DNA of 64,000 nt, taken from positions 2,108,001 through 2,172,000 of the forward strand of contig CDROCS010000506.1 of NCBI GenBank assembly GCA_977020255.1, in the 5' to 3' direction. Every line of letters starts with the position of its first letter. Position 1 is the first letter of the stretch. A program made the position numbers and the translations under genes. Under the pieces are notes generated by a model, which ran no database searches, was not told where the DNA came from, and was given only the letters and a program-made list of their open reading frames with translations. Shown here piece by piece: positions 14,278-58,902 of the stretch. This stretch comes from Obrimoposthia wandeli (lineage: Eukaryota).

Positions 14278-14655
14278 TTAACTTGCTTCACAAATATCTG
14301 CAGCCCAAGGGCCTAAGGTTTTCCCGCCTTGGCCTTTATAAATAAACTTCACACCTATATTATCCTCATGCGCTAAGCGATAAATGCTACTGGTCTTTTC
14401 TTCACATAAAGTACGGTGGGTTTGTTTCTCTATATTTTCTTGTTGCCAGACGAGGTTTGTTGCCGGTAGCTGATAGGTTACCGTTAGGATAGAGTTGTAT
14501 CGATCAAACTTTAGATGTTGATAATTATCGGCCATTTCTTGATAACGCACGATAGTTATATTATCTAATTTAGTTGGTTGGTATTTGTAGTTTTGTGTCG
14601 ATTGACATCCGTATAACCCAGTACTTAGCATGATAAATGCAAATAACTTATTCAT
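14278..14655 (-). CDS. Hypothetical lipoprotein
   Basis: 125 aa, signal peptide with lipobox LYGC, two further Cys; SD-like AAGGAAG upstream. Confidence 0.75.
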   Translation of the reverse strand: MNKLFAFIMLSTGLYGCQSTQNYKYQPTKLDNITIVRYQEMADNYQHLKFDRYNSILTVTYQLPATNLVWQQENIEKQTHRTLCEEKTSSIYRLAHEDNIGVKFIYKGQGGKTLGPWAADICEAS

Positions 14656-14690
14656 AAAACACCACTTCCTTGTGTCATTTTTATTGTCTT

Positions 14691-14733
14691 GATAGCCACC
14701 GATGTTAACACTTGATTAACATTGGTGGCTATC
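14691..14733. repeat. 18-bp inverted repeat between RND and lipoprotein genes
   Basis: GATAGCCACCGATGTTAA-7 nt-TTAACATTGGTGGCTATC (one mismatch). Confidence 0.85.
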
Positions 14734-14751
14734 GTTTTCAGACCGCTGCAC

Positions 14752-17700: not shown

Positions 17701-17904
17701 GATCGCTAAGCTTTCCTCTGCTTCATCAGGTGTTGCACCGGGCAAGGCGATGGTTATATTAATGACATCGATAGTGACATCTGGAAATACTTCGACATTG
17801 ACTCGATATTTTAGGGTGAAAAATCCGGCGCCAAGGATGAGTACCATGAGTAAATTGGCGGCCACGTGATTACGCGTAAACCAAGCAATTAAATTATGCA
17901 TCAA
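14752..17904 (-). CDS. RND efflux permease (AcrB/AcrD/AcrF superfamily)
   Basis: 1050 aa, two large periplasmic loops, GILVDDAIV and RFRAVMLTSITT proton-relay motifs. Confidence 0.94.
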   Translation of the reverse strand: MMHNLIAWFTRNHVAANLLMVLILGAGFFTLKYRVNVEVFPDVTIDVINITIALPGATPDEAEESLAIPIEEAILDIEGIDKITSRSTEGSATISVEVDAKYDQYRLKDEIKNRVDALNTLPSSAEKPIISQPTSSREVISVMISGALAEKELRQLGEQTRDRLLSENNITQVTLESVRPYEISIEVSEQTLRQYNLTMDEIATAINANSVDLSGGSIKTPSGEILLRSKGQAYVGSEYANIMIRSNPDGTRLMLKDIANIKDDFEETPIITRFNGEPAVIIEVYRVGSQSAITIADTVKAFILDQQALMPEGVKLDYWRDDSKIVKSRINTLSTSAIQGGILVAIMLTLFLRPAIAFWVTVGIPVSFMGGAIFMPEMDISINIISLFAFIMVLGILVDDAIVSGENVYTHLKRGEPPERAAIIGTQEVSKPVTFGILTTIAAFIPLTLIEGARGDIFAQIPAIVIPVLLFSLIESKLILPAHLKHIRMHGSNQNRFLRWQEDFANSFEQAIIRYYKPALSAVLARRYLSLTMAFSVMLIVLTLVSSGWVRFIFFPRIPSEIAKGVIVMPTGTDITVTDKYVQKMLDSALLLQKKYTDTATKESVIKDIFATVGSSGGNSSGQSHRGRVIFQVQAEEERVIDISVAALVKEWRGLIGLVPGVQSLTFKAETGHSGSPLDIQLTAHSYDSLRIVADKIKYKLADYPSVFDIEDSISKGKTELQLAIKPEAEALGLSLSNLAQQVRQAFYGEQVQRIQRGKDDVKVFIRYPENERQSIYNLNNMMIRTPAGDEIPFLEVAEVTVGTSPSTIIRIDRQRTLNITADLNKETGNLGVLKQDLTNYLDQIMQQYPSVSYSLEGEAKEQDESFSSLKLGLVFVLFTIYALLAIPFRSYTQPLIVMSVIPFGAIGAILGHIIMGSPLTLMSVLGMLALTGVVVNDSLVLVDHINKQRADGVPLKEAVRNSGVARFRAVMLTSITTFVGLMPLLFETSIQAQFLIPMAISLGFGIIFATVITLFIVPINYLLLEDFGRLVIWLKRLYRRQSDDLSSKV

Positions 17905-19116
17905 TTAGTCACCTTGCCCTGTGTTATTTGGCAGCGTGATTAACTGGGCTTTAGTGCCAGATACTACGGAACTTAATGGCGTGGTTACTAATAACTCTCC
18001 CGATTGAATGCCAACATCGACGATAGTATTGCGGCTATCTCGCCAGATGACATTGATATCTTTACGGCTGAGTAAACCGTCTTTAAATATAATGACTTGA
18101 TCGCCTTCATAAACACTGGTTGTTGGTAATACAAATACATTATTGAGGAGATTACCTGTTATTTCAGCGTTAACAAACTGACCTATTTTTAATGCCGGTT
18201 TATTACTGTTATTACGACCGTAAGGGTTTTCTATGGTCGCAACAGTATAAAGTTGACGACTTTTGGGATCTAAAGCGCCCTCTGTTCGAGTTAATTTACC
18301 TGTCCAGTTATAACGTTGATTACCGAATTGAGCGCTAATATTGACCGGAGGATAATATGAATGACTATCTTGTTTAAATTGCTCTGGTAGTTGGATGTAG
18401 TTTTGTTGTTGGCTATTAAGCGGCAGGCGAACTTCAACTTGGTCGGTTGCATAAATATCGGCTAATGCTGTACCTACAGTAACAAACTGGCCAATATCGA
18501 CGTTTTTAGTTAATACGCGGCCAGCGTAAGGCGCTAGAATTTGAGTACGTTGCAGATTGAGTTGAGTTTGTTCTAGTTGTGCTTGCACTGAGGCAAGTAC
18601 TGCATTTGCAGATGCGAGTTGTGGTTTTCGTAGTACCAGTTCGTTTGGCTGTCCCTCGCGACCAAGGCGTTGCCAGTCTCGTTGTGCTTGTTTACTTTTA
18701 GCTCGCTCTTCGGTCACCGCTAATTTTGCTTCAATTAATGCCGCAGATGCTATTTTTACTGCAATGATATAATCGCGATTATCAACGGAGAGTAGCGTAT
18801 CACCCTTATTAAAAAAACCGCCAGAAATAAATGCGGATGATACGTGGGTAATAGTACCTGATACTTGACTGGCAATACTTGCTTGGCTACGGGGTTGAAT
18901 AATGCCGTTCGTCTTCACGGAAATCGAAAAATCACTGTGTTTTATCGTCATCACGGCCACGGTTAATTGATTATCGGGTGCTTGCTTTCTCTTCTCTGAT
19001 GTTGGACTTGTGGAAGTGATGACTTGTACGATTAACCCCGTTATCACGATAACGAGTATTGGCAGAGTGTAGCGAAAGATCGTTTCAAGTTTAGTCAGTG
19101 GCTTATTCGTTGACAC
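17905..19116 (-). CDS. RND periplasmic adaptor (MFP)
   Basis: N-terminal TM, lipoyl-type motifs SQVSGTI and APYAGRV..NVDIGQFV; start moved to GTG 19116 (SD GGAG). Confidence 0.92.
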   Translation of the reverse strand: MSTNKPLTKLETIFRYTLPILVIVITGLIVQVITSTSPTSEKRKQAPDNQLTVAVMTIKHSDFSISVKTNGIIQPRSQASIASQVSGTITHVSSAFISGGFFNKGDTLLSVDNRDYIIAVKIASAALIEAKLAVTEERAKSKQAQRDWQRLGREGQPNELVLRKPQLASANAVLASVQAQLEQTQLNLQRTQILAPYAGRVLTKNVDIGQFVTVGTALADIYATDQVEVRLPLNSQQQNYIQLPEQFKQDSHSYYPPVNISAQFGNQRYNWTGKLTRTEGALDPKSRQLYTVATIENPYGRNNSNKPALKIGQFVNAEITGNLLNNVFVLPTTSVYEGDQVIIFKDGLLSRKDINVIWRDSRNTIVDVGIQSGELLVTTPLSSVVSGTKAQLITLPNNTGQGD

Positions 19117-20503
19117 GTGATAGCTCCTTTTCGGTGATAACTGTAAGCGCCGTTGGCATATCACCGCCCAGTGCGAGTAACAATTTGATGCGATTTTGAA
19201 TACGTGTATTTTTTATCGCAAGTAATGATGTTTGCGCATCAAAGGCACTGCGCTGTGATTCCAGTACCGTTATGTAATCCGTTAATCCGGCAATGTATTG
19301 TTCAAATGCGAGTTGCTCTGCGACACTAAAATAATATTCCGCATTTTGCTGTTGTAACTCTCTATTAGCGAGGGTTACTTCTGCAGCAAGCGCGGTTTCA
19401 ACTTCACTAAAGGCTTGCAACGTAACTTGAGTAACCGATATTGCCGCTTGTTGTGTCTTAGCTGTTTGTTGTGCTTGTTTTGCTATTAATGTTCCGGCAT
19501 CAAATATGGAGGTAGATGCATTGGCAAATAATGACCATATTAAACTGTCTGGTTGCAGTAAATTACTTAATTCAGGACTACTGGTACCGCCAGATAGAGA
19601 CAAGGATAAACTTGGAAACCTATTTTTATAAGCATGGGCAACACGATAATTCTCTGCTGTCAGTGCTAGCATCACTTGTTGAATGTCGAAGCGACGTTGA
19701 ATTAATTCGGACGGTAAACCTGAAGGCACGGGCATTGCAGCAAAAGTTAAATTACCATTTGCATGAATACTCGCTGCAGGGTAACGGCCTAATGATAACT
19801 CTAATTGCCGCTGCGCATTTTTTAATGCTTCTACATTTTCTTGTTTAGATGCTTTTGCTCTGGCTAAATCGGCACGGGCAAGGTAGACATCGAGAGACTG
19901 CTTTACGCCTTGGTCGTAGCCATTTTCAATAATATCTAAATTTAGCTGTAAATTTTTTTGGCGTTTATTGATTAATGCAGATTGTTGTTGATAGAAAATA
20001 AGATCAAACCATTGTTGGCTGATGAGGGCAATGGTATTTGATTGTAGCTGTTTATAATTAAGGACGGCTTTTTTTGCATCTAATGTTGCAGCCTTGGCGA
20101 GGTCATTTAGTTTGCCGAGGTAATCCATTTCCCATACGACATCAATATTAGCGGAATTACTACTGCTGGTATTTTGATTATTCGCCTGACGCCCGCTAGC
20201 AAGATAAGCATCAATTTTAGGCAACTGTCCAGCATCAGTTTGTTGCACTAAGGCGACCGCTATATCTATATTATATTGTTCTGAAGTGAGTTGGGGGTTG
20301 TTCGCTAGCGCTTCTTTTATATATTCGGTTAACTGTGGATAGGCAGTGATACCTTGCCAGGTTGTACTGATATCAGTGTGAAGATGTTCCGTACTCCATT
20401 GGGCTGGCGTTATTATCTGATTTGCCACGACCTCTGCTGGCAGGGTGAAGATACTACACCCCGATAAGTTAGTAGCCAAAATGAAGCAGATTACCTTCCG
20501 CAT
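19103..20503 (-). CDS. TolC/OprM-family outer membrane factor lipoprotein
   Basis: Lipobox LSGC, WEMD..G, PSELIQRRFDI, two-fold helical repeat. Confidence 0.92.
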   Translation of the reverse strand: MRKVICFILATNLSGCSIFTLPAEVVANQIITPAQWSTEHLHTDISTTWQGITAYPQLTEYIKEALANNPQLTSEQYNIDIAVALVQQTDAGQLPKIDAYLASGRQANNQNTSSSNSANIDVVWEMDYLGKLNDLAKAATLDAKKAVLNYKQLQSNTIALISQQWFDLIFYQQQSALINKRQKNLQLNLDIIENGYDQGVKQSLDVYLARADLARAKASKQENVEALKNAQRQLELSLGRYPAASIHANGNLTFAAMPVPSGLPSELIQRRFDIQQVMLALTAENYRVAHAYKNRFPSLSLSLSGGTSSPELSNLLQPDSLIWSLFANASTSIFDAGTLIAKQAQQTAKTQQAAISVTQVTLQAFSEVETALAAEVTLANRELQQQNAEYYFSVAEQLAFEQYIAGLTDYITVLESQRSAFDAQTSLLAIKNTRIQNRIKLLLALGGDMPTALTVITEKELSRVNE

Positions 20504-20557
20504 GAAAAATAGTTCCTTATTTTAACGTCGTGAAGTGACTTTTCTGGTGTCGCGTTA

Positions 20558-21046
20558 TCATTTTTTTAGTTTGAGAATGAAGTTAATCGCTTTACCGAGT
20601 TGCATGTAACGTTGTAAATCGGTTTTGTCATACTTGGTCGATAAATAAGTAATGTTGTTTCTATTTTTTAAATAACGAGAAATCTGTAAACGATTGAAGT
20701 TACCAACTTTGTATAACATGTCGAGTAGAGTACTCGCGCTTTCATCATCTAACGCTAATTTAATTGGATAGTCAGTTTCTTTATAGTCAATTTGCTGTAG
20801 TGACACTTTTTTTATTAATTTTTTTTCTTCTAAGTATTCTAACCATTGCTCGATGAATTGCGGTTTACAACCTGCCAGTAGATTGAAAAAACCACCGCTG
20901 TCACTTTTACATTGGGTCAGTAATAAGCAAGCAAAGCTATCATCATTGGCGCTAAAGGTAACTTCGCCAGATTCTGTCCATAATAACGATGCAACTTGAA
21001 TGGTTGCTTGTTCTTTATTAAAACCTTCGCATTTGAAAATAAACAT
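20558..21046 (-). CDS. Hypothetical cytoplasmic protein
   Basis: 162 aa ORF on the same strand, 54 bp upstream of the OMF gene; no family recognised. Confidence 0.7.
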   Translation of the reverse strand: MFIFKCEGFNKEQATIQVASLLWTESGEVTFSANDDSFACLLLTQCKSDSGGFFNLLAGCKPQFIEQWLEYLEEKKLIKKVSLQQIDYKETDYPIKLALDDESASTLLDMLYKVGNFNRLQISRYLKNRNNITYLSTKYDKTDLQRYMQLGKAINFILKLKK

Positions 21047-21107
21047 AATTGATTTAAATAAGGGAAAAATTAATTATACGCAATTTTACCCATAAAAGAA
21101 TAATAGC

Positions 21108-21506
21108 TTAATGGCGGCTTGTTAATTTATGCAGTTGATCTAAGCATACTTGAAATAAATGTTGAGCGGGGATTGTGGTTTTATCAATAGTGATTAGTTC
21201 ATCAATTAATACAGGAAATAGTGGCGGAGTCGTATATTGGCATAATGTAGTCGATAATGAAGCAGTTACACGAGCCGAAAATAACAGGACATCAATTTGA
21301 CTTGCTGTAGTTGACTCAATTGAATGTAAGCAGTCATGTGGTAGCCATATCGATTGTGATTGATCAAGTGTGATAAGACTTTTACCTAAGCGAATGTTTA
21401 TTTCACCATGACGTATAACCAGAAACTGTGCTTTATGTTGTCGTTGACGTTTGGTTTTCTCTAATGCGAGCAGATTAATTCGGGTATATTCGATAGGTAA
21501 AGACAT
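21108..21506 (-). CDS. Stand-alone AraC-type cupin/ligand-binding domain protein (no HTH)
   Basis: 132 aa, pattern (G...IRLGK.......IWLPHDCLH...FSAR) like short Vibrionaceae AraC-N proteins. Confidence 0.65.
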   Translation of the reverse strand: MSLPIEYTRINLLALEKTKRQRQHKAQFLVIRHGEINIRLGKSLITLDQSQSIWLPHDCLHSIESTTASQIDVLLFSARVTASLSTTLCQYTTPPLFPVLIDELITIDKTTIPAQHLFQVCLDQLHKLTSRH

Positions 21507-26047: not shown

Positions 26048-26457
26048 GGCCACGCTGTCTCCACCCGAGACTCAGTGAAATTGAAATCGCTGTTAAGATG
26101 CAGTGTACCTATGGCTAGACGGAAAGACCCCGTGAACCTTTACTATAGCTTGGCACTGAACATTGAACCTACATGTGTAGGATAGGTGAGACTGTAACAT
26201 TGTCGCCAGATGATGTGGAGTCTACCTTGAAATACTCCACCCTTGTACGTTTGATGTTCTAAGCCCTTATCGCTGGGTGGACAGTGTCTGCGCAGTTTGA
26301 CTGGGGCGGTCTCTCCAAAGAGTAACGGAGGAGCACGAAGGTTGGCTAAACATGGTTGGACATCATGTGGTTAGTGCAAAGCGCATAATAGCTTAATTGC
26401 GAGACAGACAATACCGAGCAGGTACGAAAGTAGGCCTTAGTGATCCGGTGGTTCTGA

Positions 26458-26500
<43 letters not shown>

Positions 26501-26588
26501 CAGGTTGATACCGCCCAAGAGTTCATATCGACGGCGGTGTTTGGCACCTCCTGATGTCGGCTCATCACATCCTGGGGCTAAAGCCGTT

Positions 26589-26620
<32 letters not shown>

Positions 26621-26952
26621 TGGTACGCGAGCTGGGTTTAGAACGTCGTGAGACAGTTCGGTCCCTATTCGCCGTGGGCGTTTGAGAATTGAGAGGAGCT
26701 GCTCCTAGTACGAGAGGACTGGAGTGGACGAACCACTGGTGTTCGGGTTGTTATGCCAATAGCATTGCCCGGTAGCTAAGTTCGAACTGATAACCGCTGA
26801 AAGCATCTAAGGGAAGCAGGCCTCGAGATGAGTTCTCACTGAGCTTTAAGCTCTCTAAAGAGCCGTTCGAGACTAGGACGTTGATAGGCAAGGTGTGTAA
26901 GCGTTGTGAGGCGTTGAGCTAACTTGTACTAATGACTCGTGAGGCTTAACCA
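24081..26952 (+). rRNA. rrl: 23S rRNA, operon 2 (indel-rich, mosaic)
   Basis: Colinear with 1529-4429 but about 29 nt shorter, with scattered indels and substitution patches. Confidence 0.95.
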
Positions 26953-27084
26953 TACAAATTAAAGTATGATTAATTGAAATATCGACTTAAGAATAGATTG
27001 AACACTTTATGTTTTAAAGACTTTTTATTTATAGCTTTTCAGATTAAAACGAAGTGAAAACTTCTATAGAAAGCAAACCAGATT

Positions 27085-27200
27085 TGCTTGGTGACCATAG
27101 TGTTGGTACCACCTGATTCCATTCCGAACTCAGTAGTGAAACGTAATAACGCCGATGGTAGTGTGGGGCTTCCCATGTGAGAGTAGGGCATCGCCAAGCG
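27085..27200 (+). rRNA. rrf: 5S rRNA, operon 2
   Basis: Near-identical to 4563-4681 with 3 nt missing. Confidence 0.95.
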
Positions 27201-27291
27201 CCACTTTTTAATTCAAGGCCAGTCGAGACTACAATCAAGGTGTAAACCTTGTATAAAGAATAGACTGATATTATATCAGCACAGATTGTGC

Positions 27292-27364
27292 GGAGTGTAG
27301 TTCAGTTGGTTAGAATACCGGCCTGTCACGCCGGGGTCGCGAGCGAGTCTCGTCCACTCCGCCA
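27292..27364 (+). tRNA. tRNA-Asp(GTC), 4 nt missing including TT of the T-loop
   Basis: GGAGTG.TAGTTCAGTTGGTTAGAATACCGGCCTGTCACGCCGG...CACTCCGCCA; 73 nt versus the canonical 77. Confidence 0.8.
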
Positions 27365-27370
27365 ACTAAT

Positions 27371-27403
27371 AAAGAGACCTGAATCATTGATTCAGGTCTC
27401 TTT
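27371..27403 (+). terminator. Terminator after tRNA-Asp
   Basis: AAAGAGACCTGAATC-att-GATTCAGGTCTCTTT, perfect 15-bp stem. Confidence 0.9.
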
Positions 27404-27441
27404 ATGCCTGAAATTTAGGCATACAGAAACACAGATTGTAC

Positions 27442-27546
27442 GGAGTGGTAGTTCAGTTGGTTAGACTCTCTATAAAAGACAAGCAGGCCTGTCACGCCGG
27501 GGCGCGAGTTGTGACTTGTAAAAAAGTCGTCCACTCTCCTTTGCCA
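27442..27546 (+). pseudogene. Disrupted tRNA-Asp(GTC), copy 2
   Basis: tRNA-Asp 5' end, anticodon arm and 3' end interrupted by three AT-rich insertions; followed by a degenerate copy of the same terminator. Confidence 0.75.
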
Positions 27547-27624
27547 ACTAATAAAGAAACCTGAATCATTAATTCAGTTTTTTTTTGTGCCTGAAATTCA
27601 GGGATACAAAAATACAGATTGTAC

Positions 27625-27648
27625 GGAGTGGAAGTTCAGTTGGTTAGA
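27625..27648 (+). pseudogene. Truncated tRNA-Asp, copy 3
   Basis: GGAGTGGAAGTTCAGTTGGTTAGA only, after the same ACAGATTGTAC leader. Confidence 0.7.
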
Positions 27649-28042
27649 CTATTTACAAAAAAGAGGCTTTTTTTGTGCCTAAAATTCATTCTAATCACTC
27701 CCCCCTATGTTGATGTAAATCTGTACACTGCCCCTTCGCGAGTTAGTCACTCCTTATCAAAAAAAAATCTGAAAAATCTGAGCTGATTTTACTGTGGTGC
27801 ACGATTTTTGGCAATTACATGATGTATTTATTTTCAATATTAAAGCGTGATTTCTGCTTATCTTGGATAAAACTAAGCTATTGAACTTAATGTGGATTAA
27901 ATTTTTTTATAAAAATACATATTGTTAGCGGTATCATTTTTTTGGCGTTTTTTTCTTATCCCAATATATTGTTGTTGACTTAAAATTGATGATCATTAGA
28001 ATACCGCGCAATTTGTCAATAAAAAAAGAAATTGGAGAGTTC

Positions 28043-29317
28043 GTGGCTGCACAAAATGACTATTCTTTAGGACCAGTTCCTAAATCAGAAAGAAAAGGTT
28101 TTATCGCACTATCATTGGTTATGCTTGGGCTTACTTTTTTCTCTGCAAGTATGTGGACTGGTGGTACGCTCGGCACTGGACTTTCTTATGATGATTTCTT
28201 CTATGCTGTATTACTTGGTAATTTAATCCTCGGTATCTATACTGCTTTCCTTGGTTATATCGGTACTAAGACAGGTCTTTCAACGCACTTGCTAGCACGT
28301 TATTCATTTGGTACTAAGGGGTCATACATCCCGTCTATCTTACTTGGTGGTACTCAGGTGGGTTGGTTTGGCGTTGGTGTTGCTATGTTTGCATTACCTG
28401 TACAAAAAGCACTGTTGGGTGAAATGGGCGTCGTGCTTGATGTAAATACCATCATCGTGATTGCTGGACTGTTAATGACTGTGACTGTTTATTTTGGTAT
28501 TTCAGCGCTGATGGTATTAAGTTTTATTGCTGTTCCTGCCATTGCGATTTTAGGTGGCTATTCAGTTTATCTTGCGGTGAATGATCTAGGTGGTATTGCT
28601 GAGATGCAAAAAATCGTTCCTGCTGTTGATAAGCAAATCGATTTTAATACAGCGCTTGCTCTAGTTATTGGCTCATTTATTAGTGCAGGTACATTGACCG
28701 CTGACTTTGTCCGTTTTGGTCGTAAACCAATGGCAGCAGTTGCTATCACGCTTATTGCCTTCTTCATTGGTAACTCATTAATGTTTATCTTTGGCGCCGC
28801 AGGTGCCGCTGCAACAGGCTTTGCTGATATATCTGATGTAATGATGACGCAGGGATTATTAATTCCAGCTATTATCGTATTAGGTCTGAATATCTGGACA
28901 ACAAATGATAATGCGCTTTATGCATCCGGTTTAGGCTTTTCAAATGTAACCGGCATAGACAGTAAAAAATTAGCAATGATAAATGGTGTGATTGGTACTA
29001 TATTTGCGCTTTGGTTATATAATAATTTTGTGGGTTGGTTGTCATTTTTAAGTGCTGCGATCCCACCAATTGGCGGTGTACTTATTGCCGATTACTTCTT
29101 AATCCACCGTGGTCAGTATGCTGAATTTGCAAAGGCTGAATTCGAAACGATTCGCTGGCAGGCTCTTATTGCTGTTGCTGCTGGTATCGCAGCTGGTCAA
29201 CTATTACCAGGTGTTGTACCTGTTAATGCCGTTATCGGTGGTGCTATTGCTTACTTCGTTTGTTGTAAACTCATGGCCTCTAAATCAATTAATACTACTA
29301 AAAAGAGTGACGCGTAA
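28043..29317 (+). CDS. codB: Cytosine permease
   Basis: NCS1 transporter similar to E. coli CodB ([21 protein letters not shown]); start moved to GTG 28043 with SD GGAG. Confidence 0.94.
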
Positions 29318-50869: not shown

Positions 50870-50906
50870 ATATTACGCTGCTGCTTATTCTGCAACAGCG
50901 TAATAT
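50870..50906. terminator. Hairpin at the 3' end of the cus islet
   Basis: ATATTACGCTG...CAGCGTAATAT 11-bp stem; weak U tract. Confidence 0.5.
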
Positions 50907-50910
50907 ATTA

Positions 50911-50950
50911 GTTAGACGTGATTAGTCGTAGTTAGTCATAGTTAGTCGCA
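50911..50950. repeat. Four imperfect 10-bp tandem repeats (GTTAGTCRTA) overlapping a stop codon
   Basis: GTTAGACGTG ATTAGTCGTA GTTAGTCATA GTTAGTCGCA. Confidence 0.7.
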
Positions 50951-51433
50951 ATTAAGGCGAAATGCTTTATGGCTTTTTTTGATGTGCTGCTTAATGTCAC
51001 CCAGTACCGTTTTTACTTGGCCTTTTGATGTTGCGTCTTGAAGCTGAGTAAAGAGGCTGGTTAATTTTTCAATGCCTTGTTGGTAAGCCATGTGCTGCAT
51101 ATGGGTGCTATGGTCCATACCTTCCATATCTTTCATATTCGCCATCTTGCTATGATCCATGCCTTTCATTGCGGGCATTTCTTGCTGTAGCTTCAAAGGG
51201 ATTTCATTTTTGGCTTTGGCGCTGTTGGCCAATAGTTTAGTTAATTGAGCTTTCATCTCAGCTTGGTCATCACGTTTGAATGCGCCGACATATGCTTTTA
51301 AATCATCACTCATTGCTGACATAACACTGCCTAATTGGGTGTCTTTACAGTGGCCGTCACCATCACCGTGGGCAAATACTGGTGAACTGAGTGCGGCGCT
51401 AAGGGTGATTGCGATAGTTAATTGTTTAAACAT
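50942..51433 (-). CDS. Periplasmic cytochrome b562-fold protein with Met/His-rich insertion
   Basis: Sec signal (..PVFA); TQLGSVM aligns with b562 ADLEDNM, KKSHKAFR with NAYHQKYR; a 30-aa loop has 9 Met and 4 His. Start moved to ATG 51433 (SD AAGGA). Confidence 0.75.
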   Translation of the reverse strand: MFKQLTIAITLSAALSSPVFAHGDGDGHCKDTQLGSVMSAMSDDLKAYVGAFKRDDQAEMKAQLTKLLANSAKAKNEIPLKLQQEMPAMKGMDHSKMANMKDMEGMDHSTHMQHMAYQQGIEKLTSLFTQLQDATSKGQVKTVLGDIKQHIKKSHKAFRLNCD

Positions 51434-51467
51434 TGCTTTTCCTTTATCTATTATTTTAAGTTTGAGT

Positions 51468-54400
51468 TTATTTATTTGTCGTTTCAATATCTTGCTCATT
51501 AACCATTTGTGATTTTAAGCTGATTGATTTCCACAGATAGAAAGAGGCTGGTAACACTAACAGTGTCAGAATGATGGCTGAAGCCATGCCACCAATCATA
51601 GGTGCAGCAATGCGTTGCATAACTTGAGAGCCGGTACCGTCACCATACATAATCGGGATCAAGCCTATTATTACGGTTGCTACTGTCATCATGATTGGGC
51701 GTACACGTAGTCCTGCGCCATCCATTATCGCTTGCTGTAATTTGGCTTTGGTGAAATTACCTGCCGCCAGTGCTGCTGCTAAGGATTGATTTAAATAAAC
51801 TAACATGATCACGCCAATTTCAACTGCAACACCGGCGAGAGCGATAAAGCCGACCCCAACCGCAATCGAGAAGTTGTAGTTGAGCAAGTACAATAACCAG
51901 ATACCACCAATCATAGCGAGCGGTAATGTCGCGAGAATGAGTAGTACCTCACCAACACGTCTAAAGGCGAGATAAAGTAATAACACGATAATAGCGAGGG
52001 TGGCAGGGATCACGACAGATAAGGTGTCTTTGGCACGTTGCATATATTCGTATTGTCCAGACCAAGCAATTGAATAACCGGTAGGTAATACTAACTGTTC
52101 GGCAACGGCTTGCTGAGCATCTACGACATAAGAACCGAGATCTCGGCCTTCGATATCCACATAAACCCAACCATTAGGGCGAGCGTTTTCTGTTTTAATC
52201 ATCGGCGCGCCGTCTTCGACATAGATATTAGCGACATCACTTAAGGCAATCCTAGCGCCTTGGGGTGTGATCAAGGGTAATAATTTCATTTGTTCAATAC
52301 TATCGCGGTAAGACTGCGGGTAACGAACATTGACAGGATAACGCTCTAATCCTTCGATGGTTTGAGTTACATTAATACCGCCTACTGCCGTTGATATTAC
52401 CTCTTGTACATCGGCAATATTCAATCCATAACGAGCGGCTTTTTCACGCTCAATATCAATTTTCACATAACGTCCGCCAACAACGCGCTCAGCATAGGCT
52501 GATGTAGTACCTGGTACATGTTGTAATATCTTTTCTATTTGCTTGCCAATTTGTTCAATCTCACTCAGTTTTTCACCTGCGATCTTGATGCCAATAGGTG
52601 TCTTTATACCTGTTGCTAGCATGTCGATACGGGTTTTGATCGGCATTACCCAAGCGTTAGTTAAACCTGGGAATTGCACTAACTTATCGAGTTCTTGGCG
52701 TAGACTTTCTGAAGTCATCCCATCACGCCACTGTGACTTTGGTTTTAATGTGATGAAGGTTTCAATCATGGTTAGCGGCGCTGCATCCGTAGCAGTTTCA
52801 GCGCGACCCGCTTTACCCCATACGCGTTCTACTTCGGGGACTGTTTTGATTAATTTATTGGTTTGTTGTAATAACTCCCGAGCTTTACCTATGCTGATAC
52901 CAGGGTAGGTGGTGGGCATATACATGAGATCACCTTCATCCAGCGGTGGAATAAATTCACTGCCGATCTTAGTAACAGGGTAAAAGCCGACAGCAACAAG
53001 GCCAATGACGATAGAAAGTAGCAGTACCGGTGCTTTCAGTGTGAATGCTAATGCCGGGCGGTATAACGCGATTAGACCGCGGTTGATTGGGTTTTTATGC
53101 TCAGGTAATACGTTACCGCGAATGAAGTAACCCATTAATATTGGCACTAAGGTCACCGCGAGTCCTGCTGATGCTGCCATTGCATAGGTTTTCGTAAAGG
53201 CGAGCGGGGCAAACATTTTCCCTTCTTGGCCTTCGAGTACGAATACAGGGACGAAACTAAAAGTAATAATAAGTAGTGAGAAGAACAGTGCTGGACCAAC
53301 TTCCGCAGCTGCTTTACTGATTACTTGCCAACGGTTTTTATCTGTTAATGGCGTCTTTTCGATATGTTTATGGACATTTTCAACCATCACAATTGCGCCA
53401 TCAACCATGGCACCAATGGCGATAGCTATCCCACCCAATGACATGATGTTGGCATTAATGCCTTGCCATGACATAACGATAAAGGCCACAAGAATACCAA
53501 TCGGTAAACTGACCAATACCACTAACGAACTGCGAATGTGGAATAGGAATAATGCACAAACAACAATAACGACAAGAAACTCTTCCAATAATTTAAGGTA
53601 GAGATTGTCGACTGCATTATCGATTAATGTTGAACGATCATATGTAGTAACAATCTCAACGCCTTCAGGTAGTGAGGCTTGTAACGTTTGAATTTTTTCT
53701 TTGACTGCAGCGATGACATCTCGAGCATTTTCACCGTAACGCATGACAATAATGCCGCCAACGACTTCACCTTCGCCGTCGAGTTCAGAAACACCTCGGC
53801 GCATTTGTGGGCCAAGGACAATATCGGCGACATCGCCTAATAATAATGGCGTGCCTGTTGCGCTGGTTTTTAAAGGAATATTTTTTAAGTCATCGATTGA
53901 GCTGATATAACCACTCGCACGGACCATGTATTCGGCTTCAGCCATTTCGATAACGCTAGCGCCAGCTTCTTGGTTTCCACGTTTGATCGCATTGGTAATT
54001 AACGATAATGGGATCTGGTAGCTGCGCAGTTTATCTGGATTGACGCTTATCTGATATTGCTTGACCATACCGCCAACGGTTGCGACTTCAGAGACGCCTG
54101 CAACAGTTTGTAGTTCATATTTTAAGAACCAATCTTGGATACTACGCAGTTGGCTTAAATCGTGATTACCGCTGGTATCGGTTAACGCATAGGAATATAC
54201 CCAACCCACGCCTGTAGCGTCAGGGCCTAGCGCTGGTTTTGCTGTGCTAGGAAGATTCGGCGTTACCTGTGATAGATATTCTAATACTCGTGATCGAGCC
54301 CAGTACATGTCAGTGCCATCGTCGAAGATAACGTAAACATAAGAGTCGCCGAAGAATGAGTAACCGCGTACTGTTTTTGCACCAGGTACAGATAACATGG

Positions 54401-54614
54401 CGGTCGTTAATGGGTAGGTCACTTGATCTTCGACTACTTGTGGCGCTTGCCCCGGGTAAGTGGTTTTAATGATAACTTGGACATCAGAGAGGTCGGGAAT
54501 GGCGTCAACTGGGGTGTTTTTGATTACAAAACTACCGTAGATAAGGACGACCAAGGTTGCTAATAACACCATGATGCGATTGTGTATCGACCATTCAATT
54601 ATTCTTTTGATCAT
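51468..54614 (-). CDS. cusA: Cu(I)/Ag(I) HME-RND efflux pump
   Basis: DAIPDLSDVQV, LGPDATGVGW; Met triad conserved (DLMYMP, PLTMIET, RIDMLATG). Confidence 0.96.
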   Translation of the reverse strand: MIKRIIEWSIHNRIMVLLATLVVLIYGSFVIKNTPVDAIPDLSDVQVIIKTTYPGQAPQVVEDQVTYPLTTAMLSVPGAKTVRGYSFFGDSYVYVIFDDGTDMYWARSRVLEYLSQVTPNLPSTAKPALGPDATGVGWVYSYALTDTSGNHDLSQLRSIQDWFLKYELQTVAGVSEVATVGGMVKQYQISVNPDKLRSYQIPLSLITNAIKRGNQEAGASVIEMAEAEYMVRASGYISSIDDLKNIPLKTSATGTPLLLGDVADIVLGPQMRRGVSELDGEGEVVGGIIVMRYGENARDVIAAVKEKIQTLQASLPEGVEIVTTYDRSTLIDNAVDNLYLKLLEEFLVVIVVCALFLFHIRSSLVVLVSLPIGILVAFIVMSWQGINANIMSLGGIAIAIGAMVDGAIVMVENVHKHIEKTPLTDKNRWQVISKAAAEVGPALFFSLLIITFSFVPVFVLEGQEGKMFAPLAFTKTYAMAASAGLAVTLVPILMGYFIRGNVLPEHKNPINRGLIALYRPALAFTLKAPVLLLSIVIGLVAVGFYPVTKIGSEFIPPLDEGDLMYMPTTYPGISIGKARELLQQTNKLIKTVPEVERVWGKAGRAETATDAAPLTMIETFITLKPKSQWRDGMTSESLRQELDKLVQFPGLTNAWVMPIKTRIDMLATGIKTPIGIKIAGEKLSEIEQIGKQIEKILQHVPGTTSAYAERVVGGRYVKIDIEREKAARYGLNIADVQEVISTAVGGINVTQTIEGLERYPVNVRYPQSYRDSIEQMKLLPLITPQGARIALSDVANIYVEDGAPMIKTENARPNGWVYVDIEGRDLGSYVVDAQQAVAEQLVLPTGYSIAWSGQYEYMQRAKDTLSVVIPATLAIIVLLLYLAFRRVGEVLLILATLPLAMIGGIWLLYLLNYNFSIAVGVGFIALAGVAVEIGVIMLVYLNQSLAAALAAGNFTKAKLQQAIMDGAGLRVRPIMMTVATVIIGLIPIMYGDGTGSQVMQRIAAPMIGGMASAIILTLLVLPASFYLWKSISLKSQMVNEQDIETTNK

Positions 54615-56092
54615 TACAGCTCTCCCTCATCATCAAAATCTAACCAAGATAAATCATCTTCAGCACTGCTATCCGTCGATACTGGCGTGGCCTCTGTACT
54701 CATTTTACTGTGATCCATTTGCAGCATGTCATCGTGGTTCATCTTGCTATGGTCCATTGCCATGTTATTTGTTGTCGGCGAACCTATTCGGCTAAAATCG
54801 GCGGTTAAGCTTGATTCTGAATCCAGTAGGAATTGAGCGCTAGTGACGATTTTGTCGCCCTCGTTAAGTCCTGCGAGTACCTCGACATAACCTGCAGATT
54901 CTCTGCCTAATGTGATCTTGATTGATTGGTATTGACCGTCGCCTTTGGCAAGTACGATGCGATCAAGTGTGCCGGAACGAATTATTGCCTCACGCGGAAC
55001 TTGTATTGAATCTGCTTGCTGCTGGCTGTCCAATGTTAATGTGGCAAACATGTTTGGTTTTAACCGCTCATCTGGATTGGCTATTTTAATTCTTACTTTT
55101 AGCGTTCGGATCGCGGCGTTTAATTCTGGGTAAATGTAATCCACTTCTCCCAGCCAAGTTTGGCCTGGAAAGCTGTCTACTTGCATAGTCGCTTTATCAC
55201 CGATGTTTACCTGACTTGCTTGAGACTCAAAAATTTCGGCTTGTAACCATATTTCAGTTAATAGCCCTGCTGTTATTATTTGCACCGCAGGTGAAATATA
55301 AGCACCTTCACGAATCGCTAGTTCAGTGATATAACCGGATTTTGGGGCTGATATAGTGACATTTTGGATCACTTTTTGAGTTCGGCTGATCTGTTTAACC
55401 TGTGCTTGGCTGATACCTAATGCAGATAAACGTTGTTTTGCCGATCTGATGAGGATGTTATTACCGATACGTAGCGTATTGAGCAATTCTTCCTGTGCTT
55501 TAATCAGTTCTGGTGAATATAAGGTGAATAGTGGTTGTCCTTTGGTGACGAACTCACCGGTATTATTGATATAGAGTTGATCAACCCAACCAGAAACGCG
55601 ACTGTTAATTTGCCAGAGTGAATCCTGATTAAATTCCAATATACCGACGGTATTTATTTGCGATGTGAAAGGGCGACGCTGTGCCGTTTGTGTGCGGACG
55701 CCTAAGTTATTTTCTACACGCGCTGATATGGTCACTAAACCTGCATCGCTTGCCGTTGTGACATCTTCGTAAACAGGAACTAAATCCATGCCCATTGGCG
55801 ATTGACCGGGTTTATCTCGACGATAGTTCGCATCCATAGGCGCAACCCAATATAGCGGTTCTTGCACTGTTGTTTGAGCTACTGTTTGTGATTTTTTAGC
55901 ATAAACAGGGACTAAATCCATGCCCATTGGTGATTGACCTGGTTTATCTCGACGGTAGTTAGCATCCATCGGTGCGACCCAATATAAGATCTCTGGTTCT
56001 GCGTTTGTAGTATTTGTTGTTGGTGTACTGAACCACGTACCCGCTGCAAGGCCCAATGCCAATGTAATTGAGCTAGTTAGTAATGTTTTCAT
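54614..56092 (-). CDS. cusB: CusB-type adaptor with two HMBD repeats and a Met/His tail
   Basis: Two YWVAPMD..PMGMDLVP domains, MFP core (LYSPEL, YPEL, LKPNM), tail MAMDHSKMNHDDMLQMDHSKM. Confidence 0.93.
   Translation of the reverse strand: MKTLLTSSITLALGLAAGTWFSTPTTNTTNAEPEILYWVAPMDANYRRDKPGQSPMGMDLVPVYAKKSQTVAQTTVQEPLYWVAPMDANYRRDKPGQSPMGMDLVPVYEDVTTASDAGLVTISARVENNLGVRTQTAQRRPFTSQINTVGILEFNQDSLWQINSRVSGWVDQLYINNTGEFVTKGQPLFTLYSPELIKAQEELLNTLRIGNNILIRSAKQRLSALGISQAQVKQISRTQKVIQNVTISAPKSGYITELAIREGAYISPAVQIITAGLLTEIWLQAEIFESQASQVNIGDKATMQVDSFPGQTWLGEVDYIYPELNAAIRTLKVRIKIANPDERLKPNMFATLTLDSQQQADSIQVPREAIIRSGTLDRIVLAKGDGQYQSIKITLGRESAGYVEVLAGLNEGDKIVTSAQFLLDSESSLTADFSRIGSPTTNNMAMDHSKMNHDDMLQMDHSKMSTEATPVSTDSSAEDDLSWLDFDDEGEL
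55770..55984 (-). repeat. Internal duplication in cusB (83-bp copies at 55770-55852 and 55902-55984)
   Basis: Identical 28-aa peptides; 8 nucleotide differences, all synonymous. Confidence 0.95.
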
Positions 56093-56100
56093 ATCAGCCT

Positions 56101-57357
56101 CTATAATGCTTGAAAATAACGAATGCGCGCTAAGGTTTTTAAATTTTGAAAGTGTAATTGTTGGTATTCAAGCGTGAGTGCTTGTTCATCCATTAATGCG
56201 TTGATGACCTGTTCAAAATCATTGGTATTGGTTTGATAACCTTGTATTGCGGCATCACTATTGGCTTTGGCTTGCACGAGAAGGGTATCTTGGTAACGCT
56301 GCATACGGGCTTTGGTATTACTGAAATTAGCAATTGCACCATTTAATATGCCATTGAATTTAATCAATAATAAATCTTTTTCTGCTTGTTTAATGCCTTT
56401 TCCTTGAGTCGCCGAGATAACGACTTGGTCTTGACGATTACTGGTGAATAGTGGGATGTTCATCGAGACTGAGCCGCTGATTAAATCACTACGACTGGAT
56501 CCGGTCGCCATATCTAGCGCTTCACGATGGCCGTAACCAATATCAACTTTAAAGGCTGGTTTATAAGATTCATTCGCAGTAGCTATATTGTTCTGAGCAA
56601 CATCAATGGCTTGTTGCGCAGCCAATACTTGTGGGTGACCAGCCAATAATTGGTAATGTTTTATGTCGGCTTGTTGTACATATTCAAGACTCTGCGGCCA
56701 AGTTGGCAGTTGCGTTGAAAATGTATCAAACGCTTGTGGGCCAACCAAAGAGACAAGTTGACCGCGTAGTGCTTGTTCTTGTTGCGCAAACGCCGCAATT
56801 TTATCATCAAATTTGGCCAGTTCTAATTCTGCTTTAATGAGGTCTTGATTTTGACGATAACCTAACTCGAATTGACGGTAGAGGTTGGTGACATGCTGAC
56901 TAAATAACTGCTGATTTTTGGCTAGTATGCTTTGGGCTATTTTGGCAAAGCGAATATCAAACCATAATTCACGGATCTGCAGTTTTAATTCTAATTGACG
57001 GTTTTCAGCTAATAGTATGCTTTGCTGTGCCTGTAAGGAAAAACCTTTCGCGGTTAATTCCAGGGAATCTCCGGCTGAAAATTGCTGTGACAGACCGAGA
57101 CTAAACTGGGTCATTGGGTCATCGGATAGTGATAAGCTATCAACTGGCACATTATTCAAGCCGAATTTTATCATTGGATCGGCAAGTTGTGAGCGGCTGA
57201 TACCTTGTGCAATTAAGCTGGCTTGTTGTGCGCTGTATAGTGTGGCAGATGGATCGCGTTTTAGGGCGATATCCTCGGCAACAGACAGCGTCAATTGTTG
57301 AGCATTCGCATTGATCGTTAACAATGCGAATAACCCCAAATATATTTTGGATGGCAT
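56101..57357 (-). CDS. TolC-family outer membrane factor of the cus operon
   Basis: Signal peptide, LADPMIKFG, FKVDIGYG, SMNIPLF; operon position. No lipobox. Confidence 0.88.
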   Translation of the reverse strand: MPSKIYLGLFALLTINANAQQLTLSVAEDIALKRDPSATLYSAQQASLIAQGISRSQLADPMIKFGLNNVPVDSLSLSDDPMTQFSLGLSQQFSAGDSLELTAKGFSLQAQQSILLAENRQLELKLQIRELWFDIRFAKIAQSILAKNQQLFSQHVTNLYRQFELGYRQNQDLIKAELELAKFDDKIAAFAQQEQALRGQLVSLVGPQAFDTFSTQLPTWPQSLEYVQQADIKHYQLLAGHPQVLAAQQAIDVAQNNIATANESYKPAFKVDIGYGHREALDMATGSSRSDLISGSVSMNIPLFTSNRQDQVVISATQGKGIKQAEKDLLLIKFNGILNGAIANFSNTKARMQRYQDTLLVQAKANSDAAIQGYQTNTNDFEQVINALMDEQALTLEYQQLHFQNLKTLARIRYFQAL

Positions 57358-57396
57358 TCTATGTCCTTAAATTAATTGATTTTTAAATTATGAAAA

Positions 57397-57780
57397 TCAA
57401 TTAATGAGAGGCGGTCGATAGAGGTTATCTTGGTATGTTCTTAAGAAGAGAGTCGGGGAGTGATTAATAATATTGTTTTGTTTGTGGGTATCGATTGTTA
57501 GCTTATCAGGGTTAATAAAGGAGATTAAACTGATGGCATTACAGTCATTACAGGTATCGGTTTGGCAGCAATTATGATGATTACTTTCTGTTTCACCGAT
57601 TACATTGCTGGACTCTGTTGTATCCATACAATGAGTCATATCAGTCATTGTCGTTTTATTTGATGACATACTTTGCATATCGCAAGGCAGATCTGCAGAC
57701 ATAGCATACTGACTCATTGCCTGAAGCGGTAATGAGAAGGTGTTGATTAAGATTAATAAAATCAATAATACTATACGCAT
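57397..57780 (-). CDS. Secreted Cys/His/Met-rich protein with C-terminal RPP (DUF2946/CzcI-like architecture)
   Basis: Signal peptide, HHNCC..CNDC, Met-rich, ends LYRPPLIN; first gene after the promoter. Confidence 0.75.
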   Translation of the reverse strand: MRIVLLILLILINTFSLPLQAMSQYAMSADLPCDMQSMSSNKTTMTDMTHCMDTTESSNVIGETESNHHNCCQTDTCNDCNAISLISFINPDKLTIDTHKQNNIINHSPTLFLRTYQDNLYRPPLIN

Positions 57781-57824
57781 GAAAAGTTCGTTATCAGCAA
57801 TAAATAAAAATGAATAGACGAGAC

Positions 57825-57855
57825 ATGATAATCGTTACCTTAAGGGGAAGGTCAA
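57825..57855 (-). promoter_or_regulatory. CueR/MerR-type promoter of the cus islet
   Basis: Minus strand TTGACC-TTCCCCTTAAGGTAACGAT(19)-TATCAT; the first 14 nt equal the E. coli copA promoter as I recall it. Confidence 0.8.
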
Positions 57856-57917
57856 GAGGGGAGATTATAAATTATAGTATTAAACTTTAGGAATCAAAAA
57901 GCATAAAAAAAAGGCAT

Positions 57918-57942
57918 AAAAAAACCTCGATAAACGAGGTTT
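57918..57942 (-). terminator. tRNA operon terminator
   Basis: AAACCTCG-loop-CGAGGTTT followed by a U run on the minus strand. Confidence 0.88.
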
Positions 57943-57965
57943 CTTTATTTATTCTTGTAAGAAAG

Positions 57966-58041
57966 TGGTGGGCTGTGAAGGATTTGAACCTTCGACCAAT
58001 TGATTAAAAGTCAACTGCTCTACCAACTGAGCTAACAGCCC
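57966..58041 (-). tRNA. tRNA-Lys(TTT)
   Basis: GGGCTGTTAGCTCAG...CTTTTAA...CAGCCCACCA. Confidence 0.97.
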
Positions 58042-58094
58042 CCATGGTCTTTCTTTTTATAGTTTTACGTCTTAAACGTAACACCACAATTAAG

Positions 58095-58170
58095 TGGTGG
58101 GTCCTACTGGGCTTGAACCAGTGACCCTCGCCTTGTAAGGGCGATGCTCTCCCAACTGAGCTAAGGACCC
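58095..58170 (-). tRNA. tRNA-Val(TAC)
   Basis: GGGTCCTTAGCTCAG...CTTACAA...GGACCCACCA. Confidence 0.97.
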
Positions 58171-58209
58171 ACATTATTTTTTAGCGATAGTTGTGGCTAT
58201 CGTATAAAC

Positions 58210-58220
58210 TGGTTGCGGGA

Positions 58221-58279
<59 letters not shown>

Positions 58280-58286
58280 TCCCGCG
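58210..58286 (-). tRNA. tRNA-fMet(CAT), initiator
   Basis: C1:A72 mismatch, GGG/CCC anticodon stem. Confidence 0.97.
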
Positions 58287-58338
58287 ACAATGCTGTTGTG
58301 TACTGTTTCTCTAATAGTAAGAAAGAGCAGTAAGAAAG

Positions 58339-58414
58339 TGGTGGGCTGTGAAGGATTTGAACCTTCGACCAATTGATTAAAAGTCAACTGCTCTACCAAC
58401 TGAGCTAACAGCCC
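58339..58414 (-). tRNA. tRNA-Lys(TTT)
   Basis: Identical to 57966-58041. Confidence 0.97.
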
Positions 58415-58467
58415 CCATGGTCTTTCTTTTTATAGTTTTACGTCTTAAACGTAACACCACAATTAAG

Positions 58468-58543
58468 TGGTGGGTCCTACTGGGCTTGAACCAGTGACCC
58501 TCGCCTTGTAAGGGCGATGCTCTCCCAACTGAGCTAAGGACCC
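58468..58543 (-). tRNA. tRNA-Val(TAC)
   Basis: Identical to 58095-58170. Confidence 0.97.
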
Positions 58544-58582
58544 ACATTATTTTTTAGCGATAGTTGTGGCTATCGTATAAAC

Positions 58583-58593
58583 TGGTTGCGGGA

Positions 58594-58642
<49 letters not shown>

Positions 58643-58659
58643 AACTGCTCCATCCCGCG
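58583..58659 (-). tRNA. tRNA-fMet(CAT), initiator
   Basis: One D-loop difference from 58210-58286. Confidence 0.97.
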
Positions 58660-58682
58660 ACAATACTGTGTTATAAAGAAAG

Positions 58683-58758
58683 TGGTGGGCTGTGAAGGAT
58701 TTGAACCTTCGACCAATTGATTAAAAGTCAACTGCTCTACCAACTGAGCTAACAGCCC
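58683..58758 (-). tRNA. tRNA-Lys(TTT)
   Basis: Identical to the other Lys copies. Confidence 0.97.
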
Positions 58759-58826
58759 CCGAATTCTTTCTTCATAGTAAATCCCGTTACTTATCTTATA
58801 AAAGATATATAACCAGATTTAATATA

Positions 58827-58902
58827 TGGTGGGTCCTACTGGGCTTGAACCAGTGACCCTCGCCTTGTAAGGGCGATGCTCTCCCAACTGAGCTAAGGAC
58901 CC
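58827..58902 (-). tRNA. tRNA-Val(TAC)
   Basis: Identical to the other Val copies. Confidence 0.97.

Follow-up and report, generated by a model that had tools for sequence, protein, structure and literature searches.

How does a bacterium switch on a copper and silver exporter that has no CusRS two-component system beside it, and what do the two small genes that bracket its pump genes contribute? The question is raised by five genes on the minus strand of the window, that is, of the whole 64,000-nucleotide (nt) stretch analyzed here, which is part of contig C506 in an assembly of 1.35 Gb and 6912 contigs, a mixture with many bacteria. Because the assembly is a mixture and searches across it score just the top candidates, genome-wide statements were checked on related Moritella genomes. 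Between the promoter and the last stop codon (57855 to 50942), the list of open reading frames (ORFs) gives a small leader gene, g1 (57780–57397, 127 residues), the genes for an outer-membrane factor (OMF; 57357–56101, 418 residues), CusB (56092–54614, 492 residues) and CusA (54614–51468, 1048 residues), and a second small gene, g5 (51433–50942, 163 residues), all on the minus strand. An earlier note on this DNA had described five co-directional genes with gaps of 0–39 bp; the common direction was confirmed, while the gaps, from g1 to g5, measure 39, 8, −1 (an overlap) and 34 nt. We propose that these genes form a copper/silver efflux operon under two-level control, with a CueR promoter followed by a copper-sensing leader, and that the operon ends in a copper-handling b562-like protein. 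We regard this reading as moderately probable.

The pump genes establish what the operon exports. Against TIGR00914, whose cut-off is 701, CusA scores 1284 bits; its score against E. coli CusA (3t51/3k07) is 1387 bits, and methionines align at M573, M623 and M672. CusB contains CusB/HlyD domains (PF16576, E 1.8e-75) and lies above the cut-off of the RND_mfp model; against the CusB model NF007303 it reaches 244 bits (cut-off 390), two HMBD repeats (PF19335, in two N-terminal stretches) replacing the N-terminus. These repeats come from an 85-nt direct duplication whose copies are 91% identical and 132 nt apart (55770–55986), and the protein ends in a His/Met tail, MDHSKM. Agarivorans CusB aligns only from residue 70–78 onward, which suggests a single HMBD repeat there. 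The OMF has a Sec signal peptide and belongs to the OEP family (PF02321, E 1.7e-20), matching TolC and NodT only weakly beyond that. It has no match to the CusC model and no lipobox cysteine in its signal-peptide region, so the name cusC given to its gene in the earlier note can be kept as a functional label but does not denote an orthologue of E. coli CusC. Together, these results support the assignment of the locus as a copper/silver operon of the heavy-metal efflux resistance-nodulation-division (HME-RND) type. Metal-binding motifs were seen, as had been claimed, in four of the products (g1, CusB, CusA and g5) and not in the OMF, and neither cusRS nor cusF was found at the locus. No CusF domain (PF11604) occurs in the five operon products or in the four Moritella genomes searched; the matches scored in the mixed assembly lie on other contigs.

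A single MerR-type promoter, also proposed previously, lies upstream of g1 at 57825–57855 (minus strand). It comprises a −35 element, TTGACC (57855–57850), a 19-nt spacer, and a −10 element, TATCAT (57830–57825); the whole reads CTTGACCTTCCCCTTAAGGTAACGATTATCAT, with the imperfect dyad ACCTTCCCCTTAAGGTAACGAT within the spacer. Over the −35 element and the left half of the dyad, which make up the first 15 nt of CTTGACCTTCCCCTT..., the sequence is that of E. coli PcopA (K-12 record), and it agrees with the copA promoter of the window (6753–6784) at 24 of 32 positions. This 32-nt block is kept amid diverged flanks in four other Moritella species, and in each of four Moritella genomes the cus and copA promoters are the best matches to their shared pattern. 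In Psychromonas, all 10 loci show a box of this type, again with a 19-bp spacer, ahead of the leader. The regulator itself is at hand: copA (6819–9218) and cueR (9292–9684) both lie in the window, at 41–51 kb from the operon according to the ends measured (the earlier figure was about 48 kb), and the encoded CueR scores 161.3 bits against TIGR02044 (cut-off 147.4). In every Moritella genome a single CueR, adjoining copA, passes the family cut-off, and Moritella sp. JT01, with only one CueR-class gene, still keeps the box. In Vibrio parahaemolyticus, CueR control of cusFABC was shown by experiment (PMC12341060). Since a CueR-driven cus operon has thus been published, CueR control here is plausible and not new. 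As far as its sequence can tell, the promoter is supported as CueR-like.

Other regulators and pumps of this kind were encountered along the way. In Moritella sp. PE36 there is another CueR-like gene, which scores below the family cut-off, and a second P-type ATPase, 37% identical to CopA, lies behind divergent CueR-like boxes (G002:C130:71004–71103). A CusS/CopS-family kinase is encoded elsewhere in three of the four Moritella genomes. In the mixed assembly, a kinase of that family on G000:C3952 (4163–5485) is 77% identical to the orthologue of Moritella sp. JT01; the same contig, which may belong to the same Moritella, carries a second pump of the CusA/CzcA family (26195–29281). In another bacterium of that assembly (G000:C122:80170–86974), a good CueR-type box, CTTGACCTTACCCTTAGGGAAAGGTTTAAGCT, is followed about 3.4 kb below by an adaptor-sized ORF with an apparently fused CusF domain and then by CusA.

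The product of g1 begins with a putative signal peptide (MRIVLLILLILINTFSLPLQA, cut before M) that, read by eye, follows the n-h-c layout and does not vary within Moritella. It carries a CxxC motif at C77/C80 (CNDC, residues 77–80) and ends in LYRPPLIN, with RPP at 122–124, three residues before the stop codon, and its two prolines at 123–124 of 127. Conservation is concentrated at the two ends, where the signal peptide and LYRPPLI(S/N) are invariant, the mature middle being the least conserved region. A Pro-Pro pair near the C-terminus is kept in all 25 leaders examined. Close homologues of g1 occur only in Moritella-like sequences; an equivalent ORF is present in all 14 fetched cassettes of Agarivorans and Psychromonas, where it ends in (S)LYRPP or FRPP/DRPP plus three residues. 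The distance between the two motifs behaves as a ruler: from the last Cys of CxxxC to the Arg of RPP it is exactly 43 residues in all 14 of these leaders, and the CxxC-to-RPP spacing is 41–42 residues in 10 of 11 Moritella leaders. Total lengths range over 110–166 residues, or 110–138 when counted from the likely start.

This layout is that of the CutF-like proteins, defined by a length below 150 residues, a signal peptide, a Pro-Pro within the last 15 residues, and a same-strand gene no more than 1000 nt downstream (PMC9973294). With 127 residues, a putative signal peptide, Pro-Pro at 123–124 and the OMF gene 39 nt downstream, g1 fits these rules. The same study, which covers 5,334 CutF-like genes, names CusD, SilD, CopL and CruR as members and finds that the commonest downstream neighbor is an outer-membrane (OEP) gene of an RND system, and it holds that CutF-like proteins are not isofunctional, CzcI lacking the Pro motif (PMC9973294). 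Its supplement text makes no mention of Moritella, Agarivorans or Psychromonas. In public records, all these leader proteins are labeled 'hypothetical'.

The transcript is predicted to fold where the leader meets the OMF gene. A hairpin at 57365–57411 (minus strand) has a 13-bp stem, formed by 57405–57393 with 57383–57371, that takes in the leader's final two codons, its stop and the four bases after it; in the predicted fold, the second Pro codon, CCU (57411–57409), also pairs with AGG of the OMF Shine-Dalgarno (SD) sequence (57367–57365). The junction has a folding energy of −13.1 kcal/mol (z −2.9). Four other Moritella species and four Agarivorans loci keep the hairpin, although its stem differs in sequence. 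In the minimum-energy fold, the OMF SD pairs with the Pro-Pro-to-stop segment of the leader in 19 of 19 loci, across intergenic regions of 36–294 nt. The pairing probability of the SD averages 0.79 in the natural sequences versus 0.44 when only the intergenic part is shuffled, and exceeds the shuffled mean in all 19, which are related loci and so not an independent count. These models predict that the OMF SD is masked by the arrest codons themselves, the Pro-Pro codons acting as the anti-SD.

The last gene, g5, was taken to start at MFKQ behind AAGGA, which gives a protein of 163 residues with the signal peptide MFKQLTIAITLSAALSSPVFA (cut before H); the ORF as listed has 185 residues and starts further upstream, within cusA. 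The Met7 and His102 haem ligands of E. coli cytochrome b562 (K-12 record) align with M38 and H155, both invariant, and the H-x-x-[FY]-R ending of b562 is kept. Several close homologues carry a precomputed match to Cytochrom_B562 (PF07361), and the ESM Atlas clusters nearest to g5 are b562. An AlphaFold (AF2) model has four helices and a low-confidence loop at residues 85–108. The family is small, with only 94 relatives in a profile search of 1.84 billion representatives. Among 43 longer relatives, the M38 position is kept in 41 and H155 in 35, while the terminal Cys pair (C29/C162 in g5) is kept in 36 and 33. About 17 of 42 relatives have a Met/His-rich insertion of 30–98 residues; it falls exactly in the loop that joins helices 2 and 3, which is 5 residues long in E. 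coli b562. In g5, this loop is built of MDHSxMxNM-type units, whose number varies among close relatives from 1 to about 7. The recurrent annotation of g5 homologues as 'copper resistance protein CopA' in public records, where others are hypothetical, would follow from these MDHSxM units.

The g5 gene directly follows cusA in five of five Moritella loci and in 14 of 16 others (19 of 21, in three genera). In cusDCBAF-type operons, cusF is the gene that follows cusA. Judged by sequence, g5 is a cytochrome b562 homologue, a predicted periplasmic four-helix bundle, in the slot that cusF occupies in cusDCBAF-type operons, and in cold-marine gammaproteobacteria it may take over the function of CusF. 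Association with cus genes does not require the loop, since a cus-linked homologue in Psychromonas sp. L1A2 (oriented positions 8932–9444) lacks the Met/His-rich loop. Away from cus genes, two more relatives without the loop were found; a Thalassotalea protein recorded as 'cytochrome b562' is an example. A literature search returned nothing relevant that links b562 to cus operons or Moritella to copper efflux. The earlier description of the two accessory proteins as uncharacterized agrees with this picture: both are conserved in three genera and are unannotated or mis-annotated in public records.

Conservation extends to the whole cassette. The identical five-gene order, for which the earlier note had suggested a comparative check, occurs in four other Moritella species, always between the tRNA array and hemCD, and the same cassette is found in Agarivorans and Psychromonas. 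In 14 of 16 fetched non-Moritella loci, genes for the OMF, CusB and CusA stand directly upstream of the g5 homologue, and CusA is 74–83% identical. Searched with a g5 profile, 11 of the family's 13 genomes and 51 of 401 genomes sampled from the order gave a match. The operon had been called an islet. An acquired origin was rejected: synteny is conserved in Moritella, and the G+C content of the operon (0.38–0.46) resembles that of its flanks (0.35–0.45). Near-identical operon DNA also occurs in food, marine and estuary metagenomes and in runs labeled with several host organisms, a spread that fits a widespread host- or seafood-associated Moritella.

Marine metatranscriptome contigs provide a view of expression. 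Comparison with one 6000-nt stretch, using contigs that give neither ends nor strands, recovered 28 of 30 bins of the operon at 95–100% identity. A 790-nt contig with a depth of 23.5 (versus about 4 elsewhere) covers 57035–57409 and bridges the OMF and leader genes; it runs 415 nt past the compared stretch and, if collinear, takes in all of the leader and reaches about 57824, beside the −10 element. At the other end, a 452-nt contig covers 51410–51683 and runs 178 nt on into g5, bridging cusA and g5. Two RNA runs inspected as raw reads yielded no reads of the operon stretch. The contigs are compatible with a single transcript starting at the proposed promoter, and they weakly support co-transcription of the five genes.

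How the second level of control might work is suggested by CutF of Rhodobacter capsulatus, in which a ribosome held on a Pro-rich motif melts a stem-loop covering the next gene's ribosome-binding site (PMC9973294; bioRxiv 10.1101/2025.02.05.636593). Going by the sequence of the promoter, a rise in cytoplasmic Cu(I) would lead the single CueR, encoded beside copA, to activate transcription across the 19-bp spacer. By analogy with CutF, the leader would then act as an exported nascent-chain sensor of the CutF/CruR/CopL kind. When the ribosome reaches R-P-P, the Cys motif, 41–43 residues upstream, would already be on the periplasmic side; copper bound there would lengthen the pause at Pro-Pro, and the paused ribosome would cover the Pro-Pro-to-stop codons that otherwise pair with the OMF SD. 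The SD thus freed, translation of the OMF would be turned on, along with that of the tightly spaced CusB and CusA. CusA would export the metal through its three-Met site, with the HMBD repeats and His/Met tail of CusB capturing Cu(I)/Ag(I). The expandable MDHSxM loop of g5 would bind Cu(I)/Ag(I), either buffering the metal or handing it to CusB/CusA.

Several observations weigh against this scheme and are considered here with the alternatives to it. At the level of RNA, the metatranscriptome library may contain DNA, CCUCCU is by nature complementary to any SD (shuffled controls already give 0.44), and misalignment of the 3' arms left RNAalifold, run on a MAFFT alignment of nine junctions, without consensus pairs, so that covariation is shown by inspection only. 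At the level of protein, g1 matches the NCBIfam model CopL_fam (NF033807) over positions 5–127 of 129 with 32.9 bits (E 8.8e-8), below the curated cut-off of 40 bits, and is thus to be seen as a distant CopL relative and not as a member by the curated rule, with 10 of 11 homologues matching at E ≤ 0.01. Pfam DUF2946 (PF11162) has no match in g1 or 11 homologues at E up to 1, and in CutF the C-terminal motif alone gave no reporter arrest (PMC9973294). It is conceivable, though unlikely, that g1 does its work once mature in the periplasm, as a CzcI/CopL-like metal-binding regulator or small chaperone, and that the hairpin is no more than a weak intercistronic structure. Its putative signal peptide would be cleavable, its Cys, Met and His residues are many, the NCBIfam name is 'CopL family metal-binding regulatory protein', and the functional diversity of the CutF-like proteins, including CzcI, would allow for it. 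The distribution of conservation, with invariant ends around a variable mature middle, speaks against such a role, and a mature metal binder would have no obvious reason to keep a 41–43-residue ruler or the pairing of SD and Pro codons at 19 of 19 loci. Another possibility concerns the sign of the switch. CruR, which shares with g1 the CxxC, the ruler and the layout of R(A)PP plus three residues, works with the opposite sign and through Rho (PMC9426467); in an operon of that polarity, arrest at RPP without copper would sustain transcription, and copper would relieve the arrest and let Rho terminate before the pump genes. The long intergenic regions of Psychromonas (87–294 nt) resemble those of cruR operons. 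We nonetheless favor the CutF-like sign, because a CruR-like one would turn the exporter off as copper rises, under a promoter that copper turns on; moreover, the Moritella intergenic region is only 39 nt long with a masked SD, which is the CutF arrangement (PMC9973294), and CruR polarity appears very improbable.

The promoter and the last gene each admit a further alternative. A promoter scan also reads an ordinary element, TTGACC-16-GATTAT, the CueR dyad has a degenerate right half (GTAACGAT versus GTAAAGGT at copA), and four Agarivorans loci have no recognizable CueR box upstream of the cassette. CueR control is therefore not obligatory for the cassette, and transcriptional control in the Agarivorans cassettes must differ from that at the loci with a box. 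Given also the second CueR-like gene of PE36 and the CusS/CopS kinases in three of four Moritella genomes and on G000:C3952, the promoter could be an ordinary sigma-70 promoter or answer to another MerR-family or a two-component regulator, such as a CusS-type system encoded elsewhere. Set against this are the preservation of the 32-nt block as a footprint within diverged flanks, its near-identity to E. coli PcopA and to the copA promoters present in those genomes, and the retention of the box in Moritella sp. JT01 with its one CueR-class gene; we find a promoter outside CueR control rather improbable. As for g5, its score against Cytochrom_B562 (PF07361) is 27.6 bits (E 4.5e-6), short of the gathering cut-off of 30. 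An exhaustive structural search (VIA-align) returned generic helical bundles (Z 10–14); the top Foldseek matches are b562, at template-modeling (TM) scores of 0.6–0.68 normalized to the target and non-significant E-values, and a PDB profile search gave b562 chains at E 0.01–0.2 only. With structural matches that are non-significant or generic, the b562 assignment rests on sequence profiles. If it is accepted, g5 could be an ordinary electron-transfer cytochrome b562 whose place after cusA is incidental, or its Met-rich loop could be without a copper role: both haem-ligand positions are kept, and loop-less relatives such as the Thalassotalea protein exist away from cus genes. We judge this quite unlikely, given a place directly after cusA in 19 of 21 loci in three genera and a loop of MDHSxM units inserted between helices 2 and 3 in about 17 of 42 representatives.

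The operon can be set beside known systems. Like cutFOG of R. capsulatus, the operon begins with a small exported gene that has a Cys motif and a C-terminal Pro-rich motif, and a short intergenic stem-loop, predicted here, lies over the next ribosome-binding site; the proposed logic, in which copper would prolong the stall, melt the stem and allow the downstream gene to be translated, is also the same. Unlike cutFOG, where a multicopper oxidase follows, the downstream gene here encodes an RND outer-membrane factor, and the PPP of CutF is replaced in Moritella by YRPP plus three residues, with the Pro-Pro codons themselves as the predicted anti-SD. CruR of Bordetella pertussis (bp2923, DUF2946; PMC9426467) resembles g1, with its putative signal peptide, in having an export signal and a CxxC; in both, a motif of the arrest type, RAPP in CruR and RPP here, is followed by three more residues and the stop; its CxxC-to-arrest-motif ruler of 45 residues was shown to matter (PMC9426467), and the corresponding distance here is 41–43. 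CruR differs in heading a copper-import operon (TonB-dependent transporter) with a long intergenic region, Rho, and relief of arrest by copper (PMC9426467).

In overall gene order, the operon resembles cusDCBAF/silDCBAF of Cupriavidus metallidurans, where a small Cys-rich leader (CusD/SilD) also comes first and the order is likewise leader-C-B-A-accessory. The last gene of those operons is CusF/SilF, whereas here it is b562-like. Xanthomonas CopL is again a small Cys-rich leader, first in its operon and followed by copAB, although the CopL_fam score of g1 is sub-threshold. With E. coli cusRS-cusCFBA, the operon shares a CusA orthologue with a three-Met site, a CusB-type adaptor and tripartite periplasmic export of Cu(I)/Ag(I); it differs in lacking an adjacent two-component system, CusF and an OMF of the CusC lipoprotein type, and in having HMBD repeats in CusB, a leader gene and a CueR-type promoter. 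V. parahaemolyticus is likewise a marine gammaproteobacterium, in which CueR, and not CusRS, drives cus together with copA; its operon starts with cusF, and the part of the paper that was read reports no leader or b562-like gene (PMC12341060). Finally, g5 resembles E. coli cytochrome b562 (CybC, PF07361) in its predicted periplasmic four-helix bundle, the Met7/His102 positions and the H-x-x-[FY]-R end, but its family has an insertion of 25–100 residues, rich in Met and His, between helices 2 and 3, and g5 itself has a Cys pair at its termini, an N-terminal His cluster and a cus-operon context.

The surroundings of the operon contain further features. Past g5, a 15-bp hairpin (50870–50906, minus strand; RNA folding) begins 36 nt beyond the stop codon; the 96-nt stretch that contains it folds with −23.6 kcal/mol (z −6.2). 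The hairpin has no U-run, and a terminator scan of the window did not list it. It is likely the 3' end, or a stabilizer, of the operon transcript. Just before it, a 10-nt unit, TAGTTAGTCG, is repeated four times at 50909–50948, overlapping the g5 stop. Downstream of the operon lie hemC and hemD. Upstream, on the same strand, eight tRNA genes form a tandem Lys(ttt)-Val(tac)-Met(cat) array (57966–58902) with a period of about 373 nt; its terminator hairpin (57916–57948) is kept in other Moritella species. A second RND operon, of the multidrug type, also lies on the minus strand (14278–21506), with an OMF (19103–20503), an adaptor (17905–19164) and a pump (14752–17904), flanked by small ORFs before (20558–21046 and 21108–21506) and after (14278–14655). 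None of these three small ORFs matches an NCBIfam family.

How unusual, then, is this operon? The earlier note had called its architecture non-canonical. A leader before an RND outer-membrane gene, and CueR control of cus genes, have both been published (PMC9973294; PMC12341060), while the fifth protein and the combination are new. The earlier interpretation is thus partly supported: right in substance, it overstated the unusualness of the architecture. What we consider new is the exact Cys-to-RPP ruler across genera, the predicted use of arrest codons as an anti-SD, the apparent stacking of a CueR promoter on a CutF-type switch, and a small, unrecognized b562-derived family with a copper-type loop downstream of cusA.

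Nascent-chain copper sensors have so far been studied upstream of an oxidase (CutF) and an importer (CruR), and not in their commonest context, RND efflux operons. The present cassette is a compact natural test case for that context, in which a 39-nt intergenic region, an arrest-codon anti-SD and a 43-residue ruler lead to sharp predictions, and in which a promoter that would answer to cytoplasmic copper is combined with a proposed switch in translation governed by copper in the periplasm. We also entertain, as a speculation with a rather small chance of being right, that g5 is a genuine haem-b cytochrome with copper bound beside the haem by its Met/His loop, making it a redox-active metallochaperone that hands metal to the pump. 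We know of no Cus accessory protein with such a function. If this were so, g5 would reduce periplasmic Cu(II) to exportable Cu(I), or oxidize Cu(I) without oxygen, and, with the leader, the operon would integrate cytoplasmic copper through CueR, periplasmic copper through the nascent leader, and the periplasmic redox state.

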